Shown here piece by piece: positions 8,851 through 62,899 of a stretch of DNA of 64,000 nt. Below the pieces are notes generated by a model that saw only the letters and a list, made by a program, of their open reading frames with translations, made no database searches and was not told the origin of the DNA. Numbering within the stretch: the stretch's first letter is position 1; the number at the start of each line of letters is the position of its first letter. The translations under genes and the position numbers were made by a program. Source of the stretch: Camelus dromedarius (taxonomy: Eukaryota); NCBI RefSeq assembly GCF_036321535.1, contig NC_087451.1, positions 41,974,001 to 42,038,000 of the forward strand, read 5' to 3'.

Positions 8851-11408
8851 CAGCTTGTGGCTTTGCTTTCTTCTTGGAGGGCTTCATTCTCAAGCAGCCT
8901 CTCCACATGGCTGGAATTAGTCTCCAAGTTAAGATATCTTGCTCTCACAGAGGCAGTGGTCAGTTAGAATTAGTGCTAAAGGGGCCAGGCAAGTCTGAGT
9001 CTGTTCCTTTGGAAACACTTTCCTAGAAGTCCCTTCCGGCAACTTCTCCCCACAACCTGTTGATCAGAACGGGATGCCACAACCACCCCTAGCCACAAGT
9101 CTGAAGAGGCAAGTATTTGCAACTGGGATTCCTGTGAGATCAACAAAACTAGGGTTTCGTTAGTGAGAACCAAGAGGAAAATGGATATTGGTTGTGGAGC
9201 CAGCAGTGCCTATCAGAATACCAAGGAAGACTCTGATTGGCTCTGCAGAGTCATGTGGTCATTCCTCAAACAACCACCAGGGCCTAATGACAAAGCCCTC
9301 TGACTGGCCAGGCCTGCTTCAGGTGCTTTCTCCTGTTGGTGAAGGCAGCCCCAGCTGAATCCCATGGAACAGGTTTTCCACAGGAAGGAGAGGTTATGTT
9401 ACCAGCTGAAGGGCATAAGGGCTTATAGTCCATAGGGATGCTGGGCAGATAAACATCCTACACCCACGACAAGAATTTTCCAGTAAATAAAGAAAATACA
9501 CCAAAAAATAGTTTTAGGGGAAAAAAAAAACCAGCTTCAGGAATCTCCTCTTTCTGACACAATGTATACAAAGTGATGTTGCAGGAACCAAATATAGCCA
9601 CACCAAAATGATGCAGAGAAAAATGGCTCGGAAAGGAAGACTTCCTGGTGGGAGTGAAGTTGGAGTTGGGGTGTGAAGGAGGTGATGGCTGGAGAGGAGG
9701 AGCCAGGAGGCAAAAGCCCAGAGGGAGAAGCACTGTGCAAAGGCTAGGAACAGGGCTGGATGGGAGAGAGAGGGAAGGTAGGTGGACAGCCCCCGCCCCC
9801 CTACAAGTGTTCTACCGCCCTGTGGCCTGGGTTTCCTCCCTGAGTGTACCTGGGCCCCAGAAAACTGGAGGCTTCCCTTTCCCTCTGGGTCAGCAGCTGA
9901 CTTTGGCTCAACCCTGATTAGCTTTGTTTTGGCCTGGGAAGTTGGGCAGAGGGGAACAGGGAAGACCTCCAGTGCTAAGTTCCAGGGGAGAGGAGGGAAA
10001 TGGCTCTGATATGTGAGCAAGAGGGAGCTGCTGAGAGCAAGTTCCCAATCCAGTAAAGAAGTGATTATATGGTCATTTTCAAGTTACCAGGCACATCCCA
10101 GGAGACTCTAGCTGGCAGCTCAACAATTCACCATGAAACCTGGGATCCGGAGCCGGCTGGTGTGGCAGCTGGGCGAGGAGCCCAGACACAGACAGCTGGG
10201 GTGGGAATCTTTAAGGATGAAAATGATGGGTAAGGAGCTTGCTGTTTCCATGGAAACTGACTCTGGGAGGATGTGACATGGTCCACTGGGTAAACCGAGG
10301 GGAGAATGCCACCCACTACCAGGCTTTACTGTGGGCGGCAAGCAGGCACCTCTGGAACCTGCACTTTTCAGCTGTGTTCCTGGGCTCTGCCCACCTCTGT
10401 GTCCTCTTAGGGACATCACGATCTGACAATGTGAGTGCCAGTTCACATAAATGTCTGAGGGGCCTGGGAAGACACCCCCGAGTCAGAAAAGACTTGGCAT
10501 GGTTCCTGCCACCCTGGGTTAGCTGTGTCTGGCAAGAGTACGGTAGTGCCAGACTATGGGACTGTAGCTGGGGCGAGTGTCACAGACTAGGGCTAGGACA
10601 TGCTGGCTTAGTGAGAATGCCCACGAGCGGGGCGAAATGGCAGGAGCTCTGGATTGGGAGTAGGTGACCTCCACTCTGATTTCATATCTATTATTACCAG
10701 CTGGCTTAGGGACCCCTGGGCAGTCACCCAGAAAGTCAGACTTGGTGGTCCCTAAGTCTCCTTCTAGCTCCACCTCCTGTCCTGGAATTTGGAACCTGGT
10801 AGTTTTGATCTCATTCGTTCCATGTCTCAGCACCCTGAACTACTCCACCACGGCACAGAGGGGCCCCCCGAGACAGCCCAGGCTCTTCTCAGGCTGCTGT
10901 GCAGGTTCTGAGACAGGCAAGATGCTGACGCAGCCCAGCCCAGCCTTTGCCGCTCCGAGCCATTTTGCCCCTGAGCTCTGGGACGTCTGAGCACAGAGAG
11001 AGATGTTTCTGAAGCTTCCGGCTGCCCCCGCGTACTCCCGCAGACGGGCTTAATAAGCTGCCTGTTGCAATAACTCTTTCATTTCCAACGGCGATTTTAA
11101 TTGGGCCGTTCCCCAGGATAAGTGGGAAGAAAAAAGCAATTTGTGTGGGATTTTGGCTAGGGCACTGAACATACACTTAAGGATTCAATTATCTCTCCCC
11201 TCTCCTCCTCCTTTTCCTTCCCCTCCTCTCCATCCTCTCCCTCCTGACCCTTTCACTCCTCCTCTGACATCCCCGTCTCCTCAGGCAGCTGCCTCTTCCC
11301 CATCCTACAAGGGGCAGCAGAGAGTGTGGGTAAGGGTCCTGCAGGCAGGGAAGAGGACACAAGAATCCTGTTGAGGGATAGGAAAGGAAGTGATTTAGGT
11401 ACTGCTAC

Positions 11409-11931
11409 TGTAATAGAGGAGAACAACTCTGACTCTGTATTGGATCTGTTCCTTTAGTTTTGACCACCGTGCCCTGTTTCCTAGGCTTAGTCTTGCTAAC
11501 TCTGTACCTTTTGTAAAACAATGTTGTCTTTAGCTTGAAATATACAAGAGAGCGTATTCTCGAGGCTCCGACCTTTAAGGATGTTAGCACTTCTGCACTT
11601 ATGTGGCAATGGCAAGTTGCAAAATAGAGAATAACCTTTGTTTTGTTGGAGGTTTACAGGGACACCATGGCCTGACCCACACGGACAATGCAAGAACAAA
11701 GAATTCCTACAGCAAGAAGTTTGCAACAACCAACCACACCGTCTCCTCTGTTTTTTTGTATAAAAAGAGCCTGTATTCTGACTGGAGTAGGATGGTTCTC
11801 CAAGATATTAGTCTGCCATCCTCTCGGTCTGCCAGCTTTCCAAATAAAACCACTATTCCTTGCCCCAACACCTCATCTCCTGATTTATTGGCCTGTGGTG
11901 CAGCGAGCAGAACGAGTTGGACTCGGTAGCA
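11409..11931 (+). mobile_element. Solo LTR, ERV1-like (copy 1)
   Basis: TG...CA ends, TATAAAA near 11759, AATAAA near 11843; clearly homologous to 27674-28169 and 46846-47345. Confidence 0.85.
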
Positions 11932-12409
11932 CCTTCATGCACACATTCATCAGCTGATATTCGTGAAGCGTCTGTCTTGGGCACTGAGTACACAACAGTA
12001 AGACAGACACGGTGGAGGGACGGACCTAGCACAGCGGGTACAAGCACAGGCTGTGGAGTGAGGACGGCAGACACAACCGCCCGAGGCCCTGGAACTGGTC
12101 ACAGGGAATTTCAGGGTTTCCTTTAAGCGTATGTCCATGACCTTGGTTACATGTGCAAGTCTGCATGAATCACTACGCCTCTTGGGCCCTCAGCTTCCCC
12201 ATTGGAACAGGATGAGGCTAAGCTGGATGATGTTTAAGATTCTGGGCGGGTCTTTCCACCTACAGAGGGAGATAAAGGCTCAGGATCCCTTAGCTTGGGC
12301 TTGCCACCCATGGGTCTGATTTGGGGCCTTAAAACAACCCATCTAATTATTTATTATGATTCCGTGGGTTGACTGGGGCTCAGCTGGACAGTTCTCCAGT
12401 GCAGTGTGC

Positions 12410-14929: not shown

Positions 14930-15450
14930 TTTAAAAACTTTAAGCACTTTATTGAGGTATTGACATACTATAAATGACATATTTATAGTGTAAGATTTGG
15001 TAGTTTTTGATACATGTTATATACCCAAGAAGCCATCATCACAACCAAAACAGTGAACATCTCCATCACCCCCAGAATTTCCTTGTGCTCCTTTCTAATT
15101 CCCCACTCCAAGCAAGTACTGAGCGGCTTTCAGTCATTGTAGGTTAGCTCACATTTTCTAGAGTTTTCTGTAAATGTAATACTACAGTGTGTACTCTTTT
15201 TTTGTTTTGGTCTGGCTCCTTTCNNNNNNNNNNNNNNNNNNNNNNNNNNNNNNNNNNNNNNNNNNNNNNNNNNNNNNNNNNNNNNNNNNNNNNNNNNNNN
15301 NNNNNNNNNNNNNNNNNNNNNNNNNNNNNNNNNNNNNNNNNNNNNNNNNNNNNTAAAAATTAATACAATGCCCTACAATCATATAAAAGAGAAACTGAAG
15401 GAAAGTAATACAATAGTAGGTAAGTTCCATGTGGATGCTCAGCCTTGATC
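14930..15450 (-). mobile_element. Old L1M 3' fragment, containing an N-run
   Basis: TTTATTGAGGTA...CCATCACC...CAGTGAACAT motifs typical of L1M 3' ends. Confidence 0.7.
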
Positions 15451-24149: not shown

Positions 24150-24460
24150 ACCTGGAGGCTGCGGCGCTGCGGGGGTGATGGAGGGGAACTAGAGGCCGAG
24201 ACCCGCCCAGAGTGGGAGGGGTGAAGGAGCCGTCAGAGCACCGCCCTCGCCCCACCCGCGCCGAGCTGGCCCCGCCCCCCTGGAAAAAAAAGCGCGGGCG
24301 CTCTGTGCGCAGGCTCAGTGCTGCTTGCGCCTGAGCTGCGCGTGCCCGGTGCCAATTAGTGGGATGGCAGAGATGGTACCTTTTGCGGTTCCCACCGAGA
24401 GCGACAAAACCTTGCTGGTGTGGGAGCTGAGCTCTGGACCCACCACCCAGGCCTTGCAAG
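24150..24460 (+). promoter_or_regulatory. RDM1 CpG-island promoter
   Basis: CpG-dense with GC boxes (CCGCCC), directly upstream of the ATG at 24364. Confidence 0.75.
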
Positions 24461-27400
24461 TGAGCTGGCAGGTTGGAAGGGAGGGATGGAGAAAGCTGCC
24501 CTTGCCCCCATAACTGGGAGTACCGGGCCCTGCTCTAGCATCTCGCCCTCCTGTAGTCTCCCCTGAGAGAAATCTTAGTTCTGGGGGCGACCTGAGCAGT
24601 CAATTGCCCCCCACAGATTTTTAAAAAATGTTTTATCTACCTATTATTTTATTCATTTTGGTAGCGGGGGAAGTAATTAGGTTTATTTTTAGAAGAGGTA
24701 GTGGGAATTGAACCCCAGACCTCGTGCATGCTAAGCATGCGCTCTACCACTGGAGCTATACCCTCTCCTAACCACCACAGATTCTTGAGAGGTTACTCTC
24801 AACAGCCAGTGTGTTACCTCCTAATGCTTCTGGAAGCTTAGGATTTCAGAGGGAAACTTGCCCGGGAAATGAGAAGTGTTTGGAGTTGCAACCTCACCGG
24901 AGTTGCCTGTGGCGAAGGGCTCGGGGAATATAAGGGAACGGGCAGTTCGTGACATTTCTTGCACGCACGTAGCGTGGGACCACCCTACAGCATTCTCTGT
25001 TCACAGTCTTCTCCCAGTTTGGACTTACGTATTCGGTCGGAGCCTCCCCAAATGTGGCGGTGGCCTGTCCTGGTTTCTATGCCATCATCGAGTTTTATTC
25101 AGCAAGGGATGCCCGCAGAGCCCAAAAGGCATGCGACCAGAAGCAGCTTTTCCAGAACTCTCCAGTGAAGGTGGGTCCAAATGTGGAATTCCTCGCTCCA
25201 CAGGGATGACATGATGAATTTAAAAATAATAGGCCAGCATTTATATAGCACTCTGGTTTACAGAATGCTTTCAGATTCATTGCTCCACTGATTCCCCCAG
25301 TTCCTCGTTTCTTTTCTTTTCTTTTTTTTAGATGAAGAAACTCAAACTCAGGCTGGTTAAGTGACTTATTTAAGGTTCATGACAAATGTGAAAGCTAGGC
25401 GTCAAACCCAAACTTACTGATGTTAAACCCCCATGTCATTTTATGCTGCCCCTTAATTTAAGAAATCTTGACAAGATTCTTGTTTATATTTACTTTTATG
25501 TGGATTTTAAATGTGTGAGCTTGACAAACTTTTGTCAGCTGTAACATCTGTAACACCATCATCATCACTCTCAAACTGCCTATTTAGAACTCTCCTTAGT
25601 TCCCAGAAAACGGTTAAAATATTTTTTCATGCATTGTAGAAACCTTATTCCATATTAATATGCCATCCAATTTTACTTCCTCAGAGCCCCAGAATTACAT
25701 TTCATTATGTGCCTCCATTCAGCCACCATTCCTTTTTCAAGGACCATTGAATATGTGAGTGAGGCTTAGATTTCCGAAACCTTTTTTTATATTTGTATGT
25801 CTTCATAAGCCTTCTCTGATTGACTTCTTGATCTAGTTACTTCCTACTGACCTTGCTGCCTCTTACTACCCACATTTCTTCCCTCACTGATTTTAACCTT
25901 GATTTAATTTGGGAACTCTCCTCAGATGTGACTCCAGGTACACTACCTCCCACTGCTGTACCCTGTTTAACCCTCTTCAATCCTGGTCCTGCTCCCTGTG
26001 ATTGAAACGATTCCCTGGCAGACATTCTTTAATTTGGAGTCTATGACCTGCCTGATTCTAGCCTGTGACCATTTCACATAGCCACTCAGATATTATAGAT
26101 GGTACTGGAAAGATTATGAAACAATTATTTGGTATCATTTCTGAGTAATGAGTTCTTTATCTTTCACTGGCCAGCAAGAACTGTGGCAAGATTATCCCAG
26201 GTGACAACTGTCTCTACTACCCAGGACCTCAGAGCCCTCTGAAGCGTCCTAATTGTCCAGAACAACTCCATTCAGGGGCTAGCTTCCATGAGACTCAACT
26301 TTTAAAAATCAGTCTTCATTTCTCCTTCCCAGCAGGCAACTTCAGTCGGAGAAAGTAATTTCATTTTCTTATTCACCCATTCCTTCATTCATTCACTTAA
26401 TCAACATACCATCAATCCCCTATTATGTCAAGACTATGCTTGTTTCTGGTAACCAGAAAACAATAAGGTATGGTTTTTTCAAGCACTTAAGGAGCTTATA
26501 AACTAGTGATGAAAGATGTACAAACAAATCAATAAAGAATAATGCTTTGGCGGGGTAAGCGGTGGTTCGGCGCAGGGCTCTCTCTGAGCGCACGGACTCA
26601 GGCACCTGGTCTATCTGCCCACTTGGGGCGGAGGTCGACTCAGCGCTTAGCCGCGGGCCCCAGACCCCGAAAGGCGGACGTGGTGCCGTCAGTTGAGGCG
26701 ACTGGGCCAGAGTGGTTACCCGCGGGAGCTACGAGGGAGGGAGGGAGCGAGCCAGCGTCGGGGAGGGGAGGGGGCCGCCCCTGCTCACCCGCCCCGTCCC
26801 GCCCCGCCCACCCTTCTCCGCTTGGGAGGAGGGAGGGGGCGGAGCCAATGGCGACAGTGCGGCGCGCCCCGCTCGCTGTGACCTGCTCCCGCCCCTGGGC
26901 GGCGGGAGGCTGGTGGTGCTGTGTCAGGCGCGCCCGGCAGAGACCCCCGGCTTGGGGAGGCCCGAGGTGGGGCGGGGCATGTGGCGGCGGCCTCCAGCTA
27001 CCCCTGGGCCAGAGGAGAGACTGCTGACTAGCGGGCGGCAGGCAGAACGGCGGCGGCCGGTGAAGAAGGGCGAGCCGCCGTCAGGCCCCGTCCCTGGCCC
27101 TTCCCCGCCTCCTCGCCGCCATTCCCCCCCCCCCCCCCCCCGCGGGTGACCATGTACTCAGCCCACAGGCCCCTGGTGCCCGGGTTCAGCGCGGCCTCTT
27201 CATGTTCCGTCAATACCGCATGGGTTCTGGGACTGCCCGGGTCAAGGGTTTGGGGTACGGAGTGCGGAGTAACGTTTATGGGGTATAGTAAGAGAATGGT
27301 GGAGGCAGAATAAAGGGAAAAAGTTACAGAGCTTGACTGGGCCAAGTGGTTAGTGATGGCAGGTGGGAGTGTAGCGGAATAATGGGAGTGCGGAGTGGGG

Positions 27401-30400
27401 AGTAACTGGGGACAGGTGTGGGGTGGAACAGGTCTGTTGCCATTGGAGGTGAGGGGTGCAGAGTAGCTGGCTTCGTTGCATTAATTATAATAGGGTGAGA
27501 CCCGCTGGTGTGGAATAGAGAGGGAGAAGGGGCTGGGGCTGTGATTGAGTAGTGGGACTAAGGACAGGTCTTGAGAAGAGAGCGAGGCACTGTTTGCTTA
27601 GATCAGAGTGCTGTGTTTGTGGTGTGCTTTACAGAGAGAGGGAGAGACCCAGGAACCTGGAGGGTAGTGCACTTGTAATAGAGGAGAACAAATGTGACTA
27701 TTGGATCTGTTCCTTTAGCTCTAACCACTGTGCCCTGCTTTCTAGGTTTATTGTTAGCTCCTCACCTTTTGTAAATGAATGTTACCTGTAGCCTGTCTGG
27801 TAAACAGGAGAGCCTTTTCTCAAGGCTCTGATCTTTCAGGATATTAACACTTCTGCACTTATATAAAGATAACAAGTTGCAGAATAGAAAGTAACCTTTG
27901 TTTTCTTGGAGGTTTTGCAGGACCTGGCCCACGTGCACAGCTGCAGGAACAAAGAATTCCTACAGCAAGAAGTTGCAACAACCAACCCCCCCCCCTTTTA
28001 ATTTATAAAAGGAGACTGTATTCTGACTGGAGGAGGATGGTTCTCCAAGACATTAGTCTGCCATCCTCTTAGCCGGCTTTCCGAATGAAGTCACTATTCC
28101 TTGCCCCAGTACCTCGTCTCCTAATTTATTGGCTTCTGCGGCAGCAGAACTAGTTGGGACTCGGTAACACACTGGGGAGGAGTTCAGAAGGGGCAGGACC
28201 AAAGTCTTGTTCCCGCATTGTCTGCTGGGCCCCTCCTTCCCCACCCAGCGGAAGATGGGGAGGCCCTGATGAGAAAGGTCTTTGTGAAGAGGGGCAGGTC
28301 CAGGTCTCCAGAGGCTGTTACGGTTTTGGAGGGCCCAGCAGGCTTCTGGGGCTCCAGTGCCCTAGTGGTAGGGGATGGGGTTGTCTTAGTGACTTGAGTC
28401 CCTTCCAGTGTTGTGTTGTTCCTCTTCTGTTGCCTCGATGTCTACTTTTTCTTTTGTCAGCACGTCACAGTGTCAGGTCTTGAGGCCAGTGCCTCACACA
28501 GGGGCTGCCCTAGGCCAGTCTTCTGAAGGCATGGGCGGGGGTGGGGTGGGGAGGCTCAGCCCAGGTCAGATTGATCTAGATCAGGGGGAAGCATGGAATG
28601 ATGGGGTCCAGGGCTAGGGCGGCTCCCTTCTCTCTTCTTGGTCTTCCCCTAGCAGGGGCCTCCTCTGCTGGTTCCACTTCCCCCAGGGAGCCAGCAGTGA
28701 GAATGACGCCCACTCCCAGCCTGGGCCAGCCCCAGGAGTCCAGCCAGGGGTGGGACCCAGCATAAGGCTGTCTCTCCTACCACCTAGCTCCTGGAGCAGG
28801 AGATTGGACCACTAGGACTGGTCCCCTGGTGAGGGAAGAACCGTCCTGTGTGTATACTCAAGGAAACACCTGGCACTGTTTCTTCCCTGGGCAGAGACTT
28901 GTAATGATTTTCTTGTCTGCCCCTTCATCTGTGCCCCTTTTTTTGAAGGAGTTGACCGCATCCTCCCATCTTTTGGGCAAGGAGGCTGGATGAAAAAAAG
29001 AAAAAAGAATAATGCTTTGACTTTATTTGTATTACTTAAATTTTTATGAATATGTTTCTATACTACATCCTATCTAAAAATTGAAATAGAGATATAAGAA
29101 AAAACTAGCAATGTAAGAGATCCACAGTAATGTGTAAGTTATTCAGAGAGTTAACTTGAGATATTTGCACTCTCAAAGAAGAGTCTAATCTAACGCAGAT
29201 GATGCTGAAAGAATGCTAATTCTTTTAGTTTATGAAATGTATAGAGGTATGTGTGTTCCTTCTCACAGGGGTTAGTAACTTGGGGAGTGGGGCTGCTACA
29301 GATTCAGGTCCTACTTCAGTGGCAGGTCCACTTATCTCTTCTTCAGATCATATTCTCAAGCAGGAGCTACAGGATGACACAACTAAAACAATTTACTTCC
29401 TTTGTGTACCCACAAGCCTGTAATAGGCTTCTGCAGGACTTCCTTGGTTCCTTTCATCATCACCTTCACCACCAGAGATCAGGGAAAGCTTCTGATTAAT
29501 CAGGGGCCATGGAAGTGATACAGAAAAGTATTGATTTAAAAGTAATAACATTTATTTAGGGCTTCCTAGGAACTCATTGCTTAAAATGTGGTCCTATTTA
29601 ATCTTCACAACCACTCTTATGAAATTGGTATTAGTAAATCTCAGGTGTATCCAAAATAAATCTCTGTGTCAAGCTGTAATATTTTTAGGCTTCTTATGTC
29701 TTTAGGTTCGTCTGGGCACCAGACATAAGATGTTTCAACCTAATGCCCTTGCCCTAAGCAGCTCCAGATGCCAAGAATTGGCCAATTACTACTTTGGATT
29801 CAATGGGTGGTCAAAAAGGATCATAAAGGTAAAGTGTAGATTTTCTTTGACTAACCAGACTCCTTTCAACATTGAAATCCTAGACTTCAGAGAGAAGACT
29901 AGAACTGGGTTGTGGGGAGATGTGAGAGACCTCCAAGTGGAAGTGTCTGAGCATTGCCCTGCCACTTAGAATTGATGATAATCTCAATGACTTGGTGGTG
30001 GTGTTCCTAATTTTCTCCAGTAGTTGTATGATATATAATAGAAAATAGTTGTCCATATCTAGTAATTCATTTGCAAGTCTTCCTTGATTTTGAAGCAACA
30101 GGACACCTCAACTATTAACTGGGCTTGGTGAAGTTTAGATTTTACTTCTAATAACAAAAAATTTTGAAGTCTTGCCTTTAATTTGAAGTCCTGGGTAGGG
30201 GTGTAACTCAATGGTAGAGCATGTGCTCAGCGTGCATGAGGTCCCAGGTTCAATCCCCAGTACGTCCATTAAAAAAAAAACAGAAAAACTCATCACCAAA
30301 ATTCTACCAGCTTCAGGATCTTTCTGACCTTGAAGAAAGGGAAAATGAAGGTATTGTGGCACAACATCAGAAGCAAAGCCTGAAGTTCTGTGCTTTAGAG

Positions 30401-33400
30401 GTGATGTTAACATCCTATGAAGCCAGGAGTCCTGGAGCTGGCATCACCGAGGAACCCTTGGACAAGCTGGAGGAAGGTCTGTTTTCCAGTGTGTGGTGGG
30501 TAGTGAGGGGGTGGGATTTCTCCTTTTTCCTTTCTTTCTAAAACTTTTTTTTTTTCAGATACATCATCACTCTCGCTAAGCAACTAAAACCCTGGGCAGA
30601 GTTTTTCTGCCTTGTGATACAGATTCTTATCTTAGGCGATGCCTGACAGAACCTTTAACTTTAAAATTTTAGAGCTGATTGCCTGTCAAGAAGTTTAGGA
30701 GGAGGGAAAAATTCTTTTTTTCCATTTTTGGTTAATAATTTGTTTTGTGCTAAAATAATCCTTTCCAATACAGATTTCTTGTAGCCTTCAGTTATCCCAA
30801 CAAAATAATCATCTAAAGATTTAAACTCTTGTGTAAATGTTCAGTCCTTTGCCTCCTATACAAGGACTTGAGTGGATAAAGTCAAATGTAGATCCCTAGA
30901 AGGGTTTTTCCAGCTGGTACTGAGTTTTTTCCTAGAACCCATGGCAGTTGCAGTTAGGGTTTTAAGTCAGAGGCAGGTCTGTTAGTTAATGGAGTGGAGG
31001 AGTGCTGGGAAACAAAATGCTGGAAAACAAGCTGCTGGACAACAAACAGCTAGAAAAGAAGCGACTCCTAAATCTCCATAAGCTTAAAATATTATATTCA
31101 CACTTGCTTGCTTAAAATGCACATGCTTGCTTTGTTTTAATGTTTTGTGCAGTAGATGACCTATAGCACGTATTATGCTAAGGAAAATTTGTGGTGAGCA
31201 ATCCTGACGTTGACCATAAGGGCACGAAGGAGGGCAGCTATTTCCTTAGGGTGAAACAATGGACAGTCTTGGAAAGCCAGATCATCCATTAACAGAACTT
31301 TGTTCTGGCATGAAAGCATGCTGTTGAACCCAGGGGAAGTATCTGCTATCTTGAAATGTCCTGGAGGCAATGACAGGATTGACTCAGAAATTTTGCATAC
31401 CCATAGGAGGGGGGTGATTGTTCCTGGAAGGGATGGGCCTCAAATTAATCAGTTAACCAGCAAGCAGAACTTAGTGCTTATCGCATGAAATATCCAAAGC
31501 CCCACATCTTTGATCACATTTTTTTCTGAGCTGTATACTCCTAATTAATATGATGCTGACCAGGCTTTCGGCACTCCAGATCCACGAGATGTTGAGTCCC
31601 CTGGTCCCATCTTTGTTCTTTACTTTGTCTCTTTGTTTCTTAAGTCTTTCATCGCCTGTCCTCAAACATGATCCCGAGCTGCACTGGACACAGCAGAGGA
31701 GGCTCCACCATCCACCTGAGTGGCTGATGCTCTGGGAGGGGCTAGATCATCTGCACTACCACCAACTCTGTTTCATTGTGTGTTTCCAGCCGTTTAAGCA
31801 CAGGAGAGCAGGAGTGTAGCTTCAGCTTGTCCATTTGAAATCTGTATGATGTGAGATTTGTGCCACATTCTTGGCTTGCATCTCCCGTCTAGTACTTCAG
31901 GAACTTCCAGAATTGATCTGGGCAGTAAAAATGTGCCCTGCCAGGATATGTCTATAACAGAGCCATTCGACCACACGCTTGTGTTGTGCCTACCTTTAGT
32001 TGCTCTGAGAATGATCTAAGAATTACAGGTGCATTTTTCTTTTTAAATGTATAACATAAAAATCAGTTATTCAGATAGGCATTTTAAATCAATTTGTTTT
32101 TCTTGGATTTAGGGCCATTATCATTACTTATGAAAAGGAAAATAACCCAGAAGCTTGCTATTCAAAGGCTATGACAGATGCATTCCAGAAACTGCTGATT
32201 GTGGTTTTAGGTAAGACTTTATTCTTTTCTTTTTTTTTTTTTTTTTTGAGGGAGGAGATAATTGGGTTTATTCATTTATATACTTGTTTTTAGAGGAGGT
32301 GCTGGGGGTTGAATCCAGGACCTCATGCTTGCTAAGCATGTGCTCTGCCACTTGAGCTATACCCTGCCCACTCTAAGACTTTCTCGGTTGTCCTTGAAGT
32401 GCTAAAAAATAATGGTCACCTAAAACACTATATATTCTTTCAGTCACTAAATTCTTTCACAGCGGCGGTCTCAAATTTGTTCTCTGGGGCATTTCTGAGA
32501 AGAATGACAGCAAGTATTACTGTGTCCAGCGTGCAGATGCAGACCGCCTTGTCCCACTTCACACAGAGAGTGCTCCATCCAGCTCTTCTTTCTCGATCGC
32601 TCGCTTATACAGGTTGGTAGAGTGATTATAAGCCTTGGACACATGTGTTTGAGTCCTAACTCTGTCTCTTAGGGTTTTTTAAATGCAATTTTAGGTTTTC
32701 TAGCCAGAGAGCTTTGGAGGTATTTATTATCTCTAAGCTGCATTATCGTTTTCTGCAAAATATGGTTAGTCATTCAGCTCATCTCATGGGGGATCGTGTA
32801 AGAGTAATGAGATGGTGAATGTAAAAAGCTTAGAACTGTGCCTGGAACATGGTAAGCAGACAAAATATGTTGGCTGTTATTATTATTGTTGTTTCCCTGT
32901 TGCAGAGTTTTAGATTTAGTATTAGATTATGTTTTTGGAGTCAATTCAGTTTGTTTTCTTTTCTCATGTGTTGTGTGAATATGATTCTTATAATAAATTA
33001 GCTACGTTTTTGTGAGCCTTGAAAGTGGTCATGCTGTTAAATGGCATCGATTGTGTTCCCTACTGAGTTACACAGTGGTGAGAACGTCACAGGCTCCGCC
33101 CAAAGGAAACTTTATGATTGTTTATTCCAGGAGCAGAGTCATTCCCCTGCTTCACAGCCCTGCAGACTGAGAGACTGAGAAAGCCTAGTGAAGTTCTCAG
33201 AGACCTTACTTGCTTATTAAGAGTTGACCGTGGATTGGTCTCAGCCTCCCAGTGCAGGCAGTCCTTCCTGTGAAGGTTGACTTCCCTGGTCACCAGGCAG
33301 AATCCCCATCAGCTGTCAACTTTTGATTAACAACCTTTAAGAACCAAACTAAATGTCTGGGTTGTTTACCTGTTCCTAACATGCTGAAGGTATTCCTTAC

Positions 33401-45823: not shown

Positions 45824-45879
45824 GGGCATCTCCAGAGAGACAGGCTTTAGAAATATAAGAGCCTCCCCAGCCATCCCCC

Positions 45880-46400
45880 AACCCCACCCGGCCGCCCCCA
45901 CCTTGCCCCCGGCGGTACTTGTAAGCGGTCTCCCCCACCCCTGCGGAGGGCGCCCACAATCTCCTGCACCAGCCCGGGCTGCCGCATCAGGACCGTTGCC
46001 TTCATCAAGGTGCTCACCTGTCCCGAGACCCGAGAGAACGGCTGACCTCGGCACGGCGCTGAGCCCATGGGGAGCCTACTGGCCGCGGTGACGCGGCGGG
46101 ACCCGGGTGGCCCGCTGTGGGTCTCGGAGAGCCGGAGGCTCGGGACCCGCCCTACGCCGGTCCCCTTCTTTCGCCTCGCCTCCTCCGTCATGGCGCTCAA
46201 ACGCTGGTCTGAGGCGTTGGGCCAACGGCCGCCTCGCGGCCGTACTGCACAGGCGTCGCCTCCCGCCTGGGCGGGGGTGGGCGTGCCGGGGGGGGGTGGG
46301 CGTGCCGGGGGTGGGCCCGCGGGCTGCAGGCCCGCCTACCCGCAGAGCCGCCAGAGGCAGGCGGCCTCGCGCGGTTGGCGCGGCGCGCTAGGTGAAAACC
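45880..46400. promoter_or_regulatory. CpG island at the NT5C3B 5' end, head-to-head with KLHL10
   Basis: CpG-dense, with GC boxes around NT5C3B exons 1 and 2. Confidence 0.75.
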
Positions 46401-46845
46401 CTGTTGGAGGGCCCTATGTTGAGGATGGAAAGGGTCCCAAGAGGTTGGGGTTCCGTGGTTGCCACTCTTTCTAGAGCAAAAATCCTAGCCAGAGCGGTCA
46501 TTTCCAGGCTTACAGTTTGCATAACAAAAGAGCTGCATGATGGGAGGGGACGTGAAAGAGCCATAAAGGGAGTTCTGTTGGACGTCCAGAAAGTGCTTCC
46601 TTCACCGGGCCCACTCCTCATCACAGAAGAAAATGAGAGGGCAGGAAAGTCATGGACAGCTGGGCCAGAAGGAAAGCCAATCAGCCTTAACTTCTCCCTG
46701 CTACCTCCTCTGACTTGACTTCCTTGAACTCAGTGTTTGGGGAGCCAGGTGCCGGGCTGTGGAAGAAGGTGAATGGATGCTACAGAGATGCGGAACTGAG
46801 CACCTGAAGTGGGCAACAGGAACTAGAGTAAATCAAAACTCATAT

Positions 46846-47345
46846 TGTTACTGAGTCCAAACTCGTTCTGCTAGCTTCACCACAGGCCAATAAATCGGGA
46901 GACGAGGTGTTGGGGCAAGGAATAGGACTTCATTCAGAAAGCCGGCAAACTAATGTCTTGGAGAACCGTCATCCTCCAATCAGAATACAGGGTCCTTTTA
47001 TACAGAAAAACAAGGGAGAGGATGTGGTTGGTTGTTGCAAAATTCTTGCTGCAGGAATTCTTTGTTTCTGCAGCTGTCCACGTAGGCCAGGTCATGGTAC
47101 TCCTGCAAAACTTCCAACAAAACAGAGGTTATTTTCTATTCTGCAACTTATCTTTATATAAGTGCAGAAGTGTTAATATCCTCAGAGCCTTGAGAGAAGG
47201 TTCTTCTGTTTACCAGACAGGCTAAAGGCAATATTCATTTACAAAAGGTTGCACAGCTGGCAAGAATAAGCCTAGAAAATGGCACAGTGGTTAGAGCTAA
47301 AGGAACAGATCCAATATAGAGTCAGATTTGTTTCCCTGTATTGTA
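46846..47345 (-). mobile_element. Solo LTR, ERV1-like (copy 3), between NT5C3B and KLHL10
   Basis: Reverse-complement homologue of copies 1 and 2; near-TSD ATAT/GTAT. Confidence 0.87.
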
Positions 47346-59800: not shown

Positions 59801-62800
59801 GACTGGACGTGATGGGTGCAGTGCCTAACATGAGGCAGCTGCTCAGCAACTGACATACGGAGAGAAGTTAGAGTTTTAAGTAAAATGGGGTGTTCTCTCC
59901 TCTCCTTCACCCCAACTCCCCAATAAAGCAGGGGCAAGTCTGGAAGAACACAAGCTCACATGACAGAGCAGATGCAGCTTGAGTGAGTGCAATGACCCTT
60001 CTCTATCCATTTTCATTCAACAAATTTCCCTCTCTCAGACCTGTATCTACCTGCCACACCCCACCTTCTAATAGATGACCCAGCCTCATGCTTTGAGAAA
60101 ACAGAAGCAATCAGGCAGAAACTTCATTTTCCTGCCATCCAATCTGCCTGCAGCTGTACCCTATACTCTGCCTTCCCAGTCTAACCTCTCTCTTTTTAAT
60201 ATAGATTCTATCCCTTTCTTGGTTTCAAGGGCTTTGGTCCTGTAACATCAATTTTTTCTCATTCACTGATGCATTTTTCATCAACACGTAAACATGCTCC
60301 AGTTTCTCCTATCTGGAGGATGGGGTGGGGAAGAGACCTCCTTGGACTCCTCCCCAAACATGTCTATGTGCATCATTTTTCTGATGCTCTTTACAGCCAG
60401 ACCTAAATGGCTCTTGTCAATGCCATCAAGAACCTCTATTATCACTGAATCCATTGACCACTTATGGATGACAGAGTTGACACGACTGGCTCCTCTCTCC
60501 TTGAAGCTTTTTCTAGGCTTCCATGGGATCAGTCTCCTCTGCTGGTTCCTCTGTAACATTCTGGAGAACCCTAGGGCTCAGTCCTGCTTCTTCTCTTTTC
60601 TATCTACACTCTTTTCCTAAATAATTTCATCCATTCCCGTGGCTTTAATTACCACCTAACCTGCTAATTTCCTTCCAGTCTCTAGCTCCCCATGCTGTTC
60701 TGTCCAACTGCCTACTAAGATATCTCCTGGACCAAAAAACCAAACTCCTGATCCTCCTCTCAAATGCTTTCCTGCAGTCTTCTATATCTTAATGAACAAT
60801 GAACAACTCCATCTTTCCAACTGCTTGGGTCAAAAAACTGGCAGTCTTTTCTCTCACACCCCACATCAAATCCATCAGCAAATCCATCTCCTCTACCTTC
60901 AAAACAGATCTAAAATTGATGCACTTTGCCATCACCTTTACGTCTCTCTCCTCAATCCAAGCCTCCACCACCACTGCAGCAATGTCCTGAACTAGTCTCT
61001 GCTTCTGCCCTTGCAGCCCCTTCCTCACCAGCCCATCCTTTTTCTCAACACAGAATTCTCCAAATTAGACTGCATCATTCCTCTACCCCAAACTTTCCCA
61101 TCTCATTCAGAGTTAGAGCTCAAGTCCTTCCACAGGCCGACAAGGCCCTGGGGGATCTGGATCCATCCCCAGGTCTCTCCGACTCCTCTTACCCTGCATC
61201 CTTTGATCCAACCACACTGGCCTCCTGCTATCCTCTAATATCCAGACCAGCTCCACCTCACAGTCTTTGCACCTGTGTCCCCTAAAGGAAACACCCTTTA
61301 CCTCACCTCCTTCGGTTCTTTGCAAAATATCTTCTTCCTCACGAGGTTTTCTCTATCCATCCAATTAAAAAAAGAACAGCTCCTCTACACCCATTTTCTG
61401 TATATCCTACCATGCTTTATTTTTCAGCTAATGCCATCATATCCAACACACTATCTTACTTATTTATTGTCCATCCACCAATGCAAGCACACGAGGAAAG
61501 GGACTTTTATCTATTTTGTCCACTGCTGAATCCCCCGCAGCTTAGAACCCAGTGTCTGATCTGATGTGTAACAGGCACTTAATAAGTATTTGTTCAAAAA
61601 ACGAATCTGTAACTTAATACTGCCTAAACAGACTCCTCCCCATTTCCAAAGTGCATTCACCTGCCTCCTAACCAGTCCCGGGAGCATCCACCCCTGCTCT
61701 CTACAATCCATCTTCCACAGTAGCAGAATCATCTTTTAAAATATTTAAATCAGATCATTTCATTACCCGGCTTCCCATCATCCACTAAAATCCAAACTCC
61801 TTTTTCCAACGCATTTCACACACTCTTCTCCCCTTCACCTACTAGATACAGGTTCACTAAATTTTCCTTTTTCAGTTCTTGTCTAAGCCAAACAGCATCC
61901 TGCCTGAGGGCCTCTGCGCTAGTTGCCAGGAATGGTCATTCCCCATCTTTGCATGGCCAGTTCTCCTTGGCTGTTTGGAGATCGGTTTAAATGTCACCTC
62001 CTCATAAAGGTCTTTCCTCTAAGCAATCACTATCCTTTCATCTTTTTAATGTCAACACAGCATTTATTACATGCAGACTTTTTCATTGCCTTTGTCCCTC
62101 CACCTGGAATCTGAGCTCCCTTCTTAAGAGCGGGGTGACCTAGATGGACTGGCTGGCTGCCTCCTCAGTGCCCAGAGCAGTGGTCTCCCCACAGCACACA
62201 GCAGGCTCTCAGTAAATATCAAACGAATGCACTTCGTCAGGGCTACTCGAGCCCCCCCCCCTCCCCGGGCACTGCCCTCTCCGCCTTCCGCGGCCTCCCT
62301 GTACGCGGCCGGCGTTCGGCGAGCATCTTAACTTCCCCGCCCTCCGCCGCCTACCTGTCGGCCAACTCCAGCACTTCGTGCACACTGCCCGTGCTGACGC
62401 GGATGCGCCCGGTGTACATGTATTCGATAACGGCTTCCACCGTGTCGGGTTCGGGCCCGGGCTCGGAGCTCCACTTGCGCATCTCCACCCGGCCCGAGCG
62501 GGACTCGGAGAACTGGCCCGAGAGCAGGGGCGTAAAGTACTCGGTGGCGGCCGCCAGCACCGAGCGGTGGGCCCGGAACTCGCGGCCTCCCGCACCGCCG
62601 AAGCACAAGGTAATGTCGCAGAAGAGGCCCTGGCGCCGTTGCTCGTTCTGCCGCCACGACAGCTCCGAGCAGTGAGAACTACATTCGAAATCCTCGGCCT
62701 CCGGGCCCGGATCGCCGCCGCTCGCCTCCATTGCAGACAAGCCCGGCCCATGCCCGAAGTCCACCGTGCCACTGCCTCTGACTTCGGCGGCCAGCCCAGC

Positions 62801-62899
62801 TGAGCCGGCGGCGGCCGTCTCCATGCTCTCCATCTCCAGCACCTGAAGAGACGCAGCAGCAGCCGCCGCCGCCGCCGCCGCCACTGCCGCCGCCGCCAT
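56812..62899 (-). CDS. KLHL11: Kelch-like protein 11, 708 aa; exons 62899..62355 and 58393..56812
   Basis: 545+1582=2127 nt; poly-Ala N-terminus, BTB ([16 protein letters not shown]), BACK and kelch repeats; ends [10 protein letters not shown]. Confidence 0.97.
59990..61760 (+). mobile_element. L2 fragments in KLHL11 intron 1
   Basis: C/T-rich L2 ORF remnants and a 3' end ...GGCACTTAATAAGTATTTGTTC. Confidence 0.75.

Follow-up and report, generated by a model that had tools for sequence, protein, structure and literature searches.

How did a GC-rich stretch resembling the promoter of one gene come to lie within an intron of another? The question is raised by 64,000 nucleotides of dromedary DNA (Camelus dromedarius, assembly GCF_036321535.1, contig NC_087451.1, positions 41,974,001 to 42,038,000 of the forward strand; hereafter the window, with positions counted from its first letter), in which a 2454-bp block interrupts the second intron of RDM1, a DNA-repair gene. 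An earlier note, made from the letters of this window, had proposed that the block is a retroposed, unspliced copy of the promoter, first exon and first intron of CIC, the capicua gene, belonging to its short isoform CIC-S. The analysis presented here supports that interpretation overall: the block is probably a retrocopy of unspliced CIC RNA, inserted by target-primed reverse transcription (TPRT) of the L1 type.

Retroposition signature and host gene

The block (26550-29003) is enclosed by two copies of AAAGAATAATGCTTTG, identical at 16 of 16 positions. This sequence occurs at exactly two sites in the window, even with up to two mismatches permitted; 0.12 matches would be expected by chance, and two matches arose in one of 100 shuffles. 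The base composition changes together with this target-site duplication (TSD). GC content is 0.58 over the whole block and 0.64-0.76 over 26500-27250, against 0.33-0.43 in the flanks, and the sharp step coincides exactly with both copies of the repeat. An 11-nt A-rich tail, AAAAAAAGAAA, abuts the second copy. It is short and impure (it contains G), and neither AATAAA nor ATTAAA occurs in the last 120 nt of the block, where AAGAAA alone was found, inside the tail itself. The insertion target, read directly, is AT/AAAG on the top strand and CTTT/AT on the bottom strand (the slash marking the nick); the consensus of the L1 endonuclease is TTTT/AA. TPRT is recognized by a TSD of ~7-20 bp, an A-rich tail at the downstream duplication and a nick site similar to TTTT/AA, and the block presents all three. 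Its ATG-bearing strand is the + strand, which is also that of the host gene. The earlier note had reported the perfect duplication, the GC-rich block within an AT-rich intron, the tail with no preceding AATAAA and the L1-endonuclease-like T/AAAG site, and had read them as retroposition; the observation is confirmed at every one of these positions, and the three hallmarks of retroposition are all in place.

The host gene was approached through RDM1 peptides, used as leads; they located three exons on the + strand. Clean splice sites delimit the coding part of RDM1 exon 1 and exons 2 and 3, and exons 1 to 4 follow one another in order on that strand. A Pfam search served as an independent test of host identity. 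Exon 2 matches RRM_1, while the match of exon 3 covers profile positions 1-24 of PF25517, the next part of the profile being taken up by exon 4 (Table 1). The bounds of exons 2 and 3, combined with these domain matches, place the block in intron 2. This confirms the predicted identity of the host as RDM1, with the block in sense orientation, and agrees with what the earlier note had said of the host. A tRNA-derived short interspersed element lies in RDM1 intron 1 (24640-24770), with an Rfam tRNA match at 24693-24765 (-, 31.9 bits).

Probable CIC origin and anatomy of the block

The origin of the block was examined with published mouse reagents, namely a CRISPR RNA (crRNA) directed at Cic-S exon 1 and two flanking genotyping primers that give a 633-bp wild-type product (Lee et al., 2026; PMC13390769). 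The crRNA, taken as its reverse complement, has a single match in the window, at 27166-27185 (+), with 17 of 20 positions identical and in frame with the residues ..HRPL.P..; neither 100 shuffles of the window nor 300 of the oligo produced such a score. The intron-1 primer, again as its reverse complement, aligns at 27658-27673 and resumes beyond a nested long terminal repeat (LTR). Once the LTR and one CACT are removed, 16 of 19 positions match, a figure equalled in 3 of 500 shuffles. The upstream primer finds its single best match of the whole window, both strands included, at 26705-26719. The three Cic-S oligos have the same order and strands as in the mouse amplicon. As controls, six oligos of the Cic-L-specific exon (PMC13390769) reach only edit distance 5-8, which is noise level. 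These matches support a block colinear with the genomic Cic-S locus, from the upstream region over exon 1 into intron 1; being colinear with intron 1, the block is unspliced. The CIC-S origin claimed in the earlier note therefore finds backing in three published oligos that lie in the expected order and orientation. Likewise, its statements that the block continues into intron rather than exon 2, and that it is no normal processed pseudogene, are upheld: the intron-1 primer matches ~450 nt 3' of the exon remnant, the open reading frame (ORF) stops at 27311, and the intron was not removed. The start of the ORF is also identical at 13 of 16 residues to the human CIC-S N-terminus, an agreement that is not in itself a test.

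An unspliced series of promoter, exon and intron is genomic in look, and could be expected if a genomic CIC fragment had been joined into a staggered break at the DNA level, with no RNA intermediate and with the A-run being source sequence. The tail of just 11 nt, with its G and without an upstream polyadenylation signal, would suit such a capture. Break-repair capture, however, usually proceeds without a long duplication, and the combination of a perfect 16-bp TSD, a sense A-run at the 3' junction and a TTT/AT bottom-strand nick is the signature of TPRT. We regard capture of a DNA fragment as very unlikely.

The first 602 bp of the block (26550-27151) have a GC content of 0.749 and 61 CpG dinucleotides, with an observed/expected ratio (o/e) of 0.72, and exceed the usual thresholds for a CpG island (>200 bp, GC >0.55, o/e >0.6). 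This promoter part contains ten GC boxes and a CCAAT box at 26845, and is devoid of a TATA box; the CCAAT box and most GC boxes are found at 26775-27033, 100-300 bp inside the block. The copy also bears a perfect C18 homopolymer (27124-27141), 10 nt upstream of the CIC-S start codon. That start codon, the ATG at 27152 that the earlier note had singled out along with about 600 bp of upstream sequence, lies by measurement 602 bp from the 5' end of the block and opens a short CIC-like ORF of 53 codons ending with TAA at 27311. Downstream of the exon remnant, 27209-27673 is G-rich, with a GC skew of up to +0.63 and no long ORF, while 28170-29003 has a GC content of 0.57 and a CpG o/e of 0.15.

CIC-S is characterized by 22 isoform-specific residues and by a second, downstream in-frame ATG in exon 1 (PMC13390769). 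The copy has 19 codons, and its second ATG (27202) is out of frame. These departures fit the decay of a copy. The remnant measures 57 nt against the ~67 nt expected from 22 codons plus 1 nt, i.e., it is ~10 nt short, and the donor position reads GTCAAT from 27209, a weak site with 4 of 9 consensus positions. With ~10 nt missing, a stop after 53 codons and a weak donor, the coding remnant is dead.

Searches with the predicted peptides and related patterns contributed little to the identification of the block. The 53-aa ORF had no candidate in a word-indexed protein database and no match in PDB sequences or Pfam. Against a library of 1.84 billion representatives, it retrieved only a bacterial repeat protein, which matched the intron-derived part and was rejected as a chance hit. 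With 16 residues, the match falls short of the length that a database-wide E-value needs, and the length filters of these protein searches exclude full-length CIC. A 145-aa ORF of the promoter part matched nothing, not even itself, so that the database used is one without ORFs of such loci. Scanned with a degenerate DNA pattern, neither metagenome contigs nor genome contigs gave a match to the CIC-S N-terminus, nor was a CIC-S-like peptide found in the full-text literature.

The intron-derived part of the block is itself interrupted by a 496-bp solo LTR, the segment (about 27670-28174) that the earlier note had omitted from its proposed BLAST comparison. It has TG...CA ends, a short duplication and dispersed copies, as solo LTRs do; a 4-bp duplication is typical of LTRs of class I endogenous retroviruses. 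The window has two further copies, at 11398-11932 (+) and 46846-47342 (-), which share 84-88% identity with the nested one, and the three LTR-like copies (~500 bp) are 83-88% identical pairwise. According to the primer alignment, the LTR site is uninterrupted in mouse intron 1; therefore the LTR was acquired later in this lineage. It may have entered the parent intron and then travelled with the RNA, or may have entered the copy later, as the data would fit both. The private divergence of the LTR is 5.4%, at which the intact 32 bp of the TSD would have escaped any change with P ~0.17.

Table 1. Features predicted in and around the block, in window coordinates.
Feature	Position	Strand	Basis or remark
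RDM1 exon 1, coding part (MAEMVPFAVPTESDKTLLVWELSSGPTTQALQ)	24364-24459	+	RDM1 peptide lead, splice sites
RDM1 exon 2, RRM part	24991-25170	+	RRM_1, 23 bits, above cut-off
RDM1 intron 2	25171-29705	+	bounds from exons 2 and 3
TSD copy 1, 16 bp	26534-26549		T at 26533 precedes; AT/AAAG target
CIC-S upstream region and 5' untranslated region	26550-27151	+	TATA-less CpG island; best match of mouse upstream primer
CIC-S first coding exon remnant, 57 nt (19 codons)	27152-27208	+	mouse exon-1 crRNA match
CIC intron 1, first part	27209-27673	+	mouse intron-1 genotyping primer
Solo LTR nested in the block, 496 bp, TG...CA ends	27674-28169	+	CACT duplication 27670-27673 / 28170-28173
CIC intron 1, second part	28170-28992	+	assigned by contiguity inside the TSD-bounded unit
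A-rich tail AAAAAAAGAAA	28993-29003	+	no canonical polyadenylation signal upstream
TSD copy 2	29004-29019		sequence match to copy 1
RDM1 exon 3	29706-29828	+	PF25517 DSRM_RDM1, E 2.6e-10; Rad52_Rad22, 22.2 bits
RDM1 exon 4	about 30308-30475	+	PF25517 profile positions 26-78

Elsewhere in the window, further CpG-island-like stretches occur at 45851-46551, 10901-11101 and 11901-12101; the stretch near 46 kb adjoins an LTR copy and is without a Pfam-recognisable ORF. A neighbouring gene begins at 62351-62899 (-) with a CpG-island first exon encoding an alanine-rich N-terminus followed by BTB/POZ (Pfam BTB, E 1.7e-19). The window also contains eight runs of N, 130-156 long, one at 15224-15353 and seven between 50832 and 57582.

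Independent samples and the proposed route from CIC to RDM1

Presence of the insertion in other samples was assessed from sampled 31-mer words in sequencing runs and contig sets. For the 3' junction, a 60-base stretch was used in which every 31-mer crosses 29003/29004, giving four sampled words. A fraction of 0.75-1.00 of these words is present in DNA runs of five organism labels, A to E, which come from 17 samples and 11 studies. Over 26300-29300, organism label A is represented by 14 DNA runs, from 11 samples, that contain 0.64-0.73 of the sampled words. Since the 3'-junction words recur in so many independent samples, they do not stem from misassembly: the 3' junction is no assembly artefact, and the insertion is common to several related taxa. 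RNA-derived contigs (X15-X20) contain 0.08-0.19 of the words of 26300-29300, and one run labelled 'RNA?' (X44) has two of the four 3'-junction words; part of this region is transcribed, either as host pre-mRNA or from the island.

Misassembly had been named in the earlier note as an outcome that would overturn its reading; it is excluded at the 3' junction, to which the test applied, the 5' junction lying outside it. That a piece of a CIC contig was misjoined into the RDM1 intron is hardly credible. GC-rich islands are indeed hard to assemble, the highest fraction of words of the 3-kb stretch in any run is 0.73, and the 5' junction yielded few sampled words. Yet a misjoin would not produce a perfect 16-bp duplication with an A-tail, nor would its 3'-junction words be expected across 17 samples, 11 studies and five organism labels.

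The insertion by L1-type TPRT of an RNA copy would have proceeded as follows. The AT/AAAG target in RDM1 intron 2 would have been nicked, the A-rich 3' end of the RNA being placed exactly at what is now the 3' junction, and a staggered break of the second strand would have generated the 16-bp duplication; these steps can be read from the junctions, and the copied unit, although its structure is genomic, has the orientation of the CIC transcript. Judging from the mouse oligos, the RNA probably spanned CIC-S exon 1 together with ~600 nt on the 5' side of its start codon and at least ~1.3 kb of the intron that follows. Priming may have taken place at an internal A-run, or the tail may have been added at a cryptic site, with L1 ORF2p as the presumed machinery. 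The whole promoter may have been moved, and may still work.

The ~600 bp upstream of the ATG call for a template that began 5' of the CIC-S start codon. We take the CIC-L promoter to lie upstream of the CIC-S promoter in mammals. The two CIC isoforms are produced from alternative promoters (PMC13390769), the mouse first exons being called 1A (Cic-L) and 1B (Cic-S) in the literature, and in Drosophila the first exon and promoter of cic-S are reported to lie inside a cic-L intron. The template was most likely a CIC pre-mRNA begun at the upstream CIC-L promoter. Transcripts of this kind would read through the CIC-S promoter, thereby accounting for the upstream 600 bp, and the copy would represent a 5'-truncated, internally primed piece of such an RNA. 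No unusual nascent RNA would then be needed, and CIC-L read-through appears to be the best explanation.

The template RNA might instead have begun upstream within the CIC-S promoter itself, in a broad initiation zone or as a promoter-upstream transcript, in which case the 5' end of the block would be full length. CpG-island promoters do initiate broadly, the block opens G-rich at 26550, and the sequence of the window fits a start at either promoter. Nevertheless, the CCAAT box and the bulk of the GC boxes place the main start region well 3' of 26550, and CIC-L read-through is the simpler source according to the scheme of Carelli et al. (2016; PMC4772013). We consider a start within the CIC-S promoter quite improbable.

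Several points weigh against a retrocopy of CIC RNA made by L1. All four 3'-junction words are missing from two full-size DNA contig sets, X45 (label B) and X46 (label C); 19 other runs have three or four of them. This gap could possibly reflect a single-nucleotide polymorphism (SNP), a contig break or the insertion missing in those animals; the words overlap, and therefore one SNP or one contig break could remove all four. The 60-mer of the 5' junction had <2 sampled words, too few for a check of the runs. Colinearity with CIC would rest on three short mouse oligos rather than on the camel's own CIC locus, and among these the upstream primer is weak by itself, its score being reached by 48 of 300 shuffles. 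With the LTR excluded, the primers are ~970 bp apart in the camel, whereas the mouse amplicon measures 633 bp. As the cause of this size gap, a tandem duplication within the intron-derived sequence was considered and rejected, TRF showing only short arrays. Moreover, the role of L1 would be deduced from its signature only, and the tail, which is short, impure and lacking a polyadenylation signal, could be source sequence.

Possible function and comparison with known systems

As the promoter part has remained a full CpG island, it may function within the intron as an alternative promoter or as one that interferes, a hypothesis drawn from sequence. The 57-nt remnant ends in phase 0 and RDM1 exon 3 begins in phase 0, so that splicing from 27208 to 29706 would stay in frame. 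In a more specific form, the transplanted island would be unmethylated and serve as a new promoter in RDM1 intron 2, its transcripts lacking exons 1-2, which encode the RRM, or would interfere with RDM1 or imprint it in the manner known from RB1; we hold this to be unlikely, though conceivable. Whatever its activity, the locus is a transplant made by nature: a CpG-island promoter of the housekeeping type, without coding body and in sense orientation, placed in an intron of a gene unrelated to its own. From it one could learn whether an island remains unmethylated and active in a new location by virtue of its sequence alone, and how the host deals with a promoter inside it. For the related taxa in which it occurs, the insertion also serves as a clean marker of the rare-genomic-change kind. 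Otherwise, it is another example of known processes, those of promoter-inheriting retrocopies and of retrocopy-borne intronic CpG islands.

Four systems invite comparison. Like an ordinary processed pseudogene, the block has a TSD, an A-tail and an L1 endonuclease-like target site; unlike one, it is unspliced, has no 3' untranslated region or polyadenylation signal and contains sequence from upstream of the transcription start. Rodent preproinsulin I, in work attributed to Soares et al. from 1985, is said to be an RNA-mediated copy of an incompletely spliced transcript begun upstream of the cap site. In both cases intron and promoter sequence would have been carried along by an RNA-mediated copy, but Ins1 kept its complete coding region and is a working gene, whereas the CIC copy ends inside intron 1.

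A third system is the PPP1R26P1 retrocopy in RB1 intron 2, whose island became an alternative promoter and brought about an imprint (Kanber et al., 2013; PMC3839921); in all, 104 human intronic CpG islands have been attributed to retrotransposition (Rademacher et al., 2014; PMC4122923). As in RB1, a truncated retrocopy has brought a CpG island into intron 2 of its host. The RB1 island, however, derives from a parental exon and lies antisense, whereas that of the block would be the promoter of the parent and lies in sense.

Finally, promoter-inheriting retrocopies (Okamura and Nakai, 2008) represent ~3% of the expressed retrocopies of human and mouse (Carelli et al., 2016; PMC4772013). In the scheme of these last authors, a transcript of an upstream parental promoter brings a downstream alternative promoter into the retrocopy (PMC4772013), the counterparts here being CIC-L as the upstream promoter and CIC-S as the one carried. 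These retrocopies are copies of spliced mRNA with a coding body, whereas the block consists of promoter, a 57-nt exon remnant and intron; it is without a coding body, and therefore retains none of the parent protein for expression. As a retrocopy carrying a promoter into another gene, the case is clean but not unprecedented.

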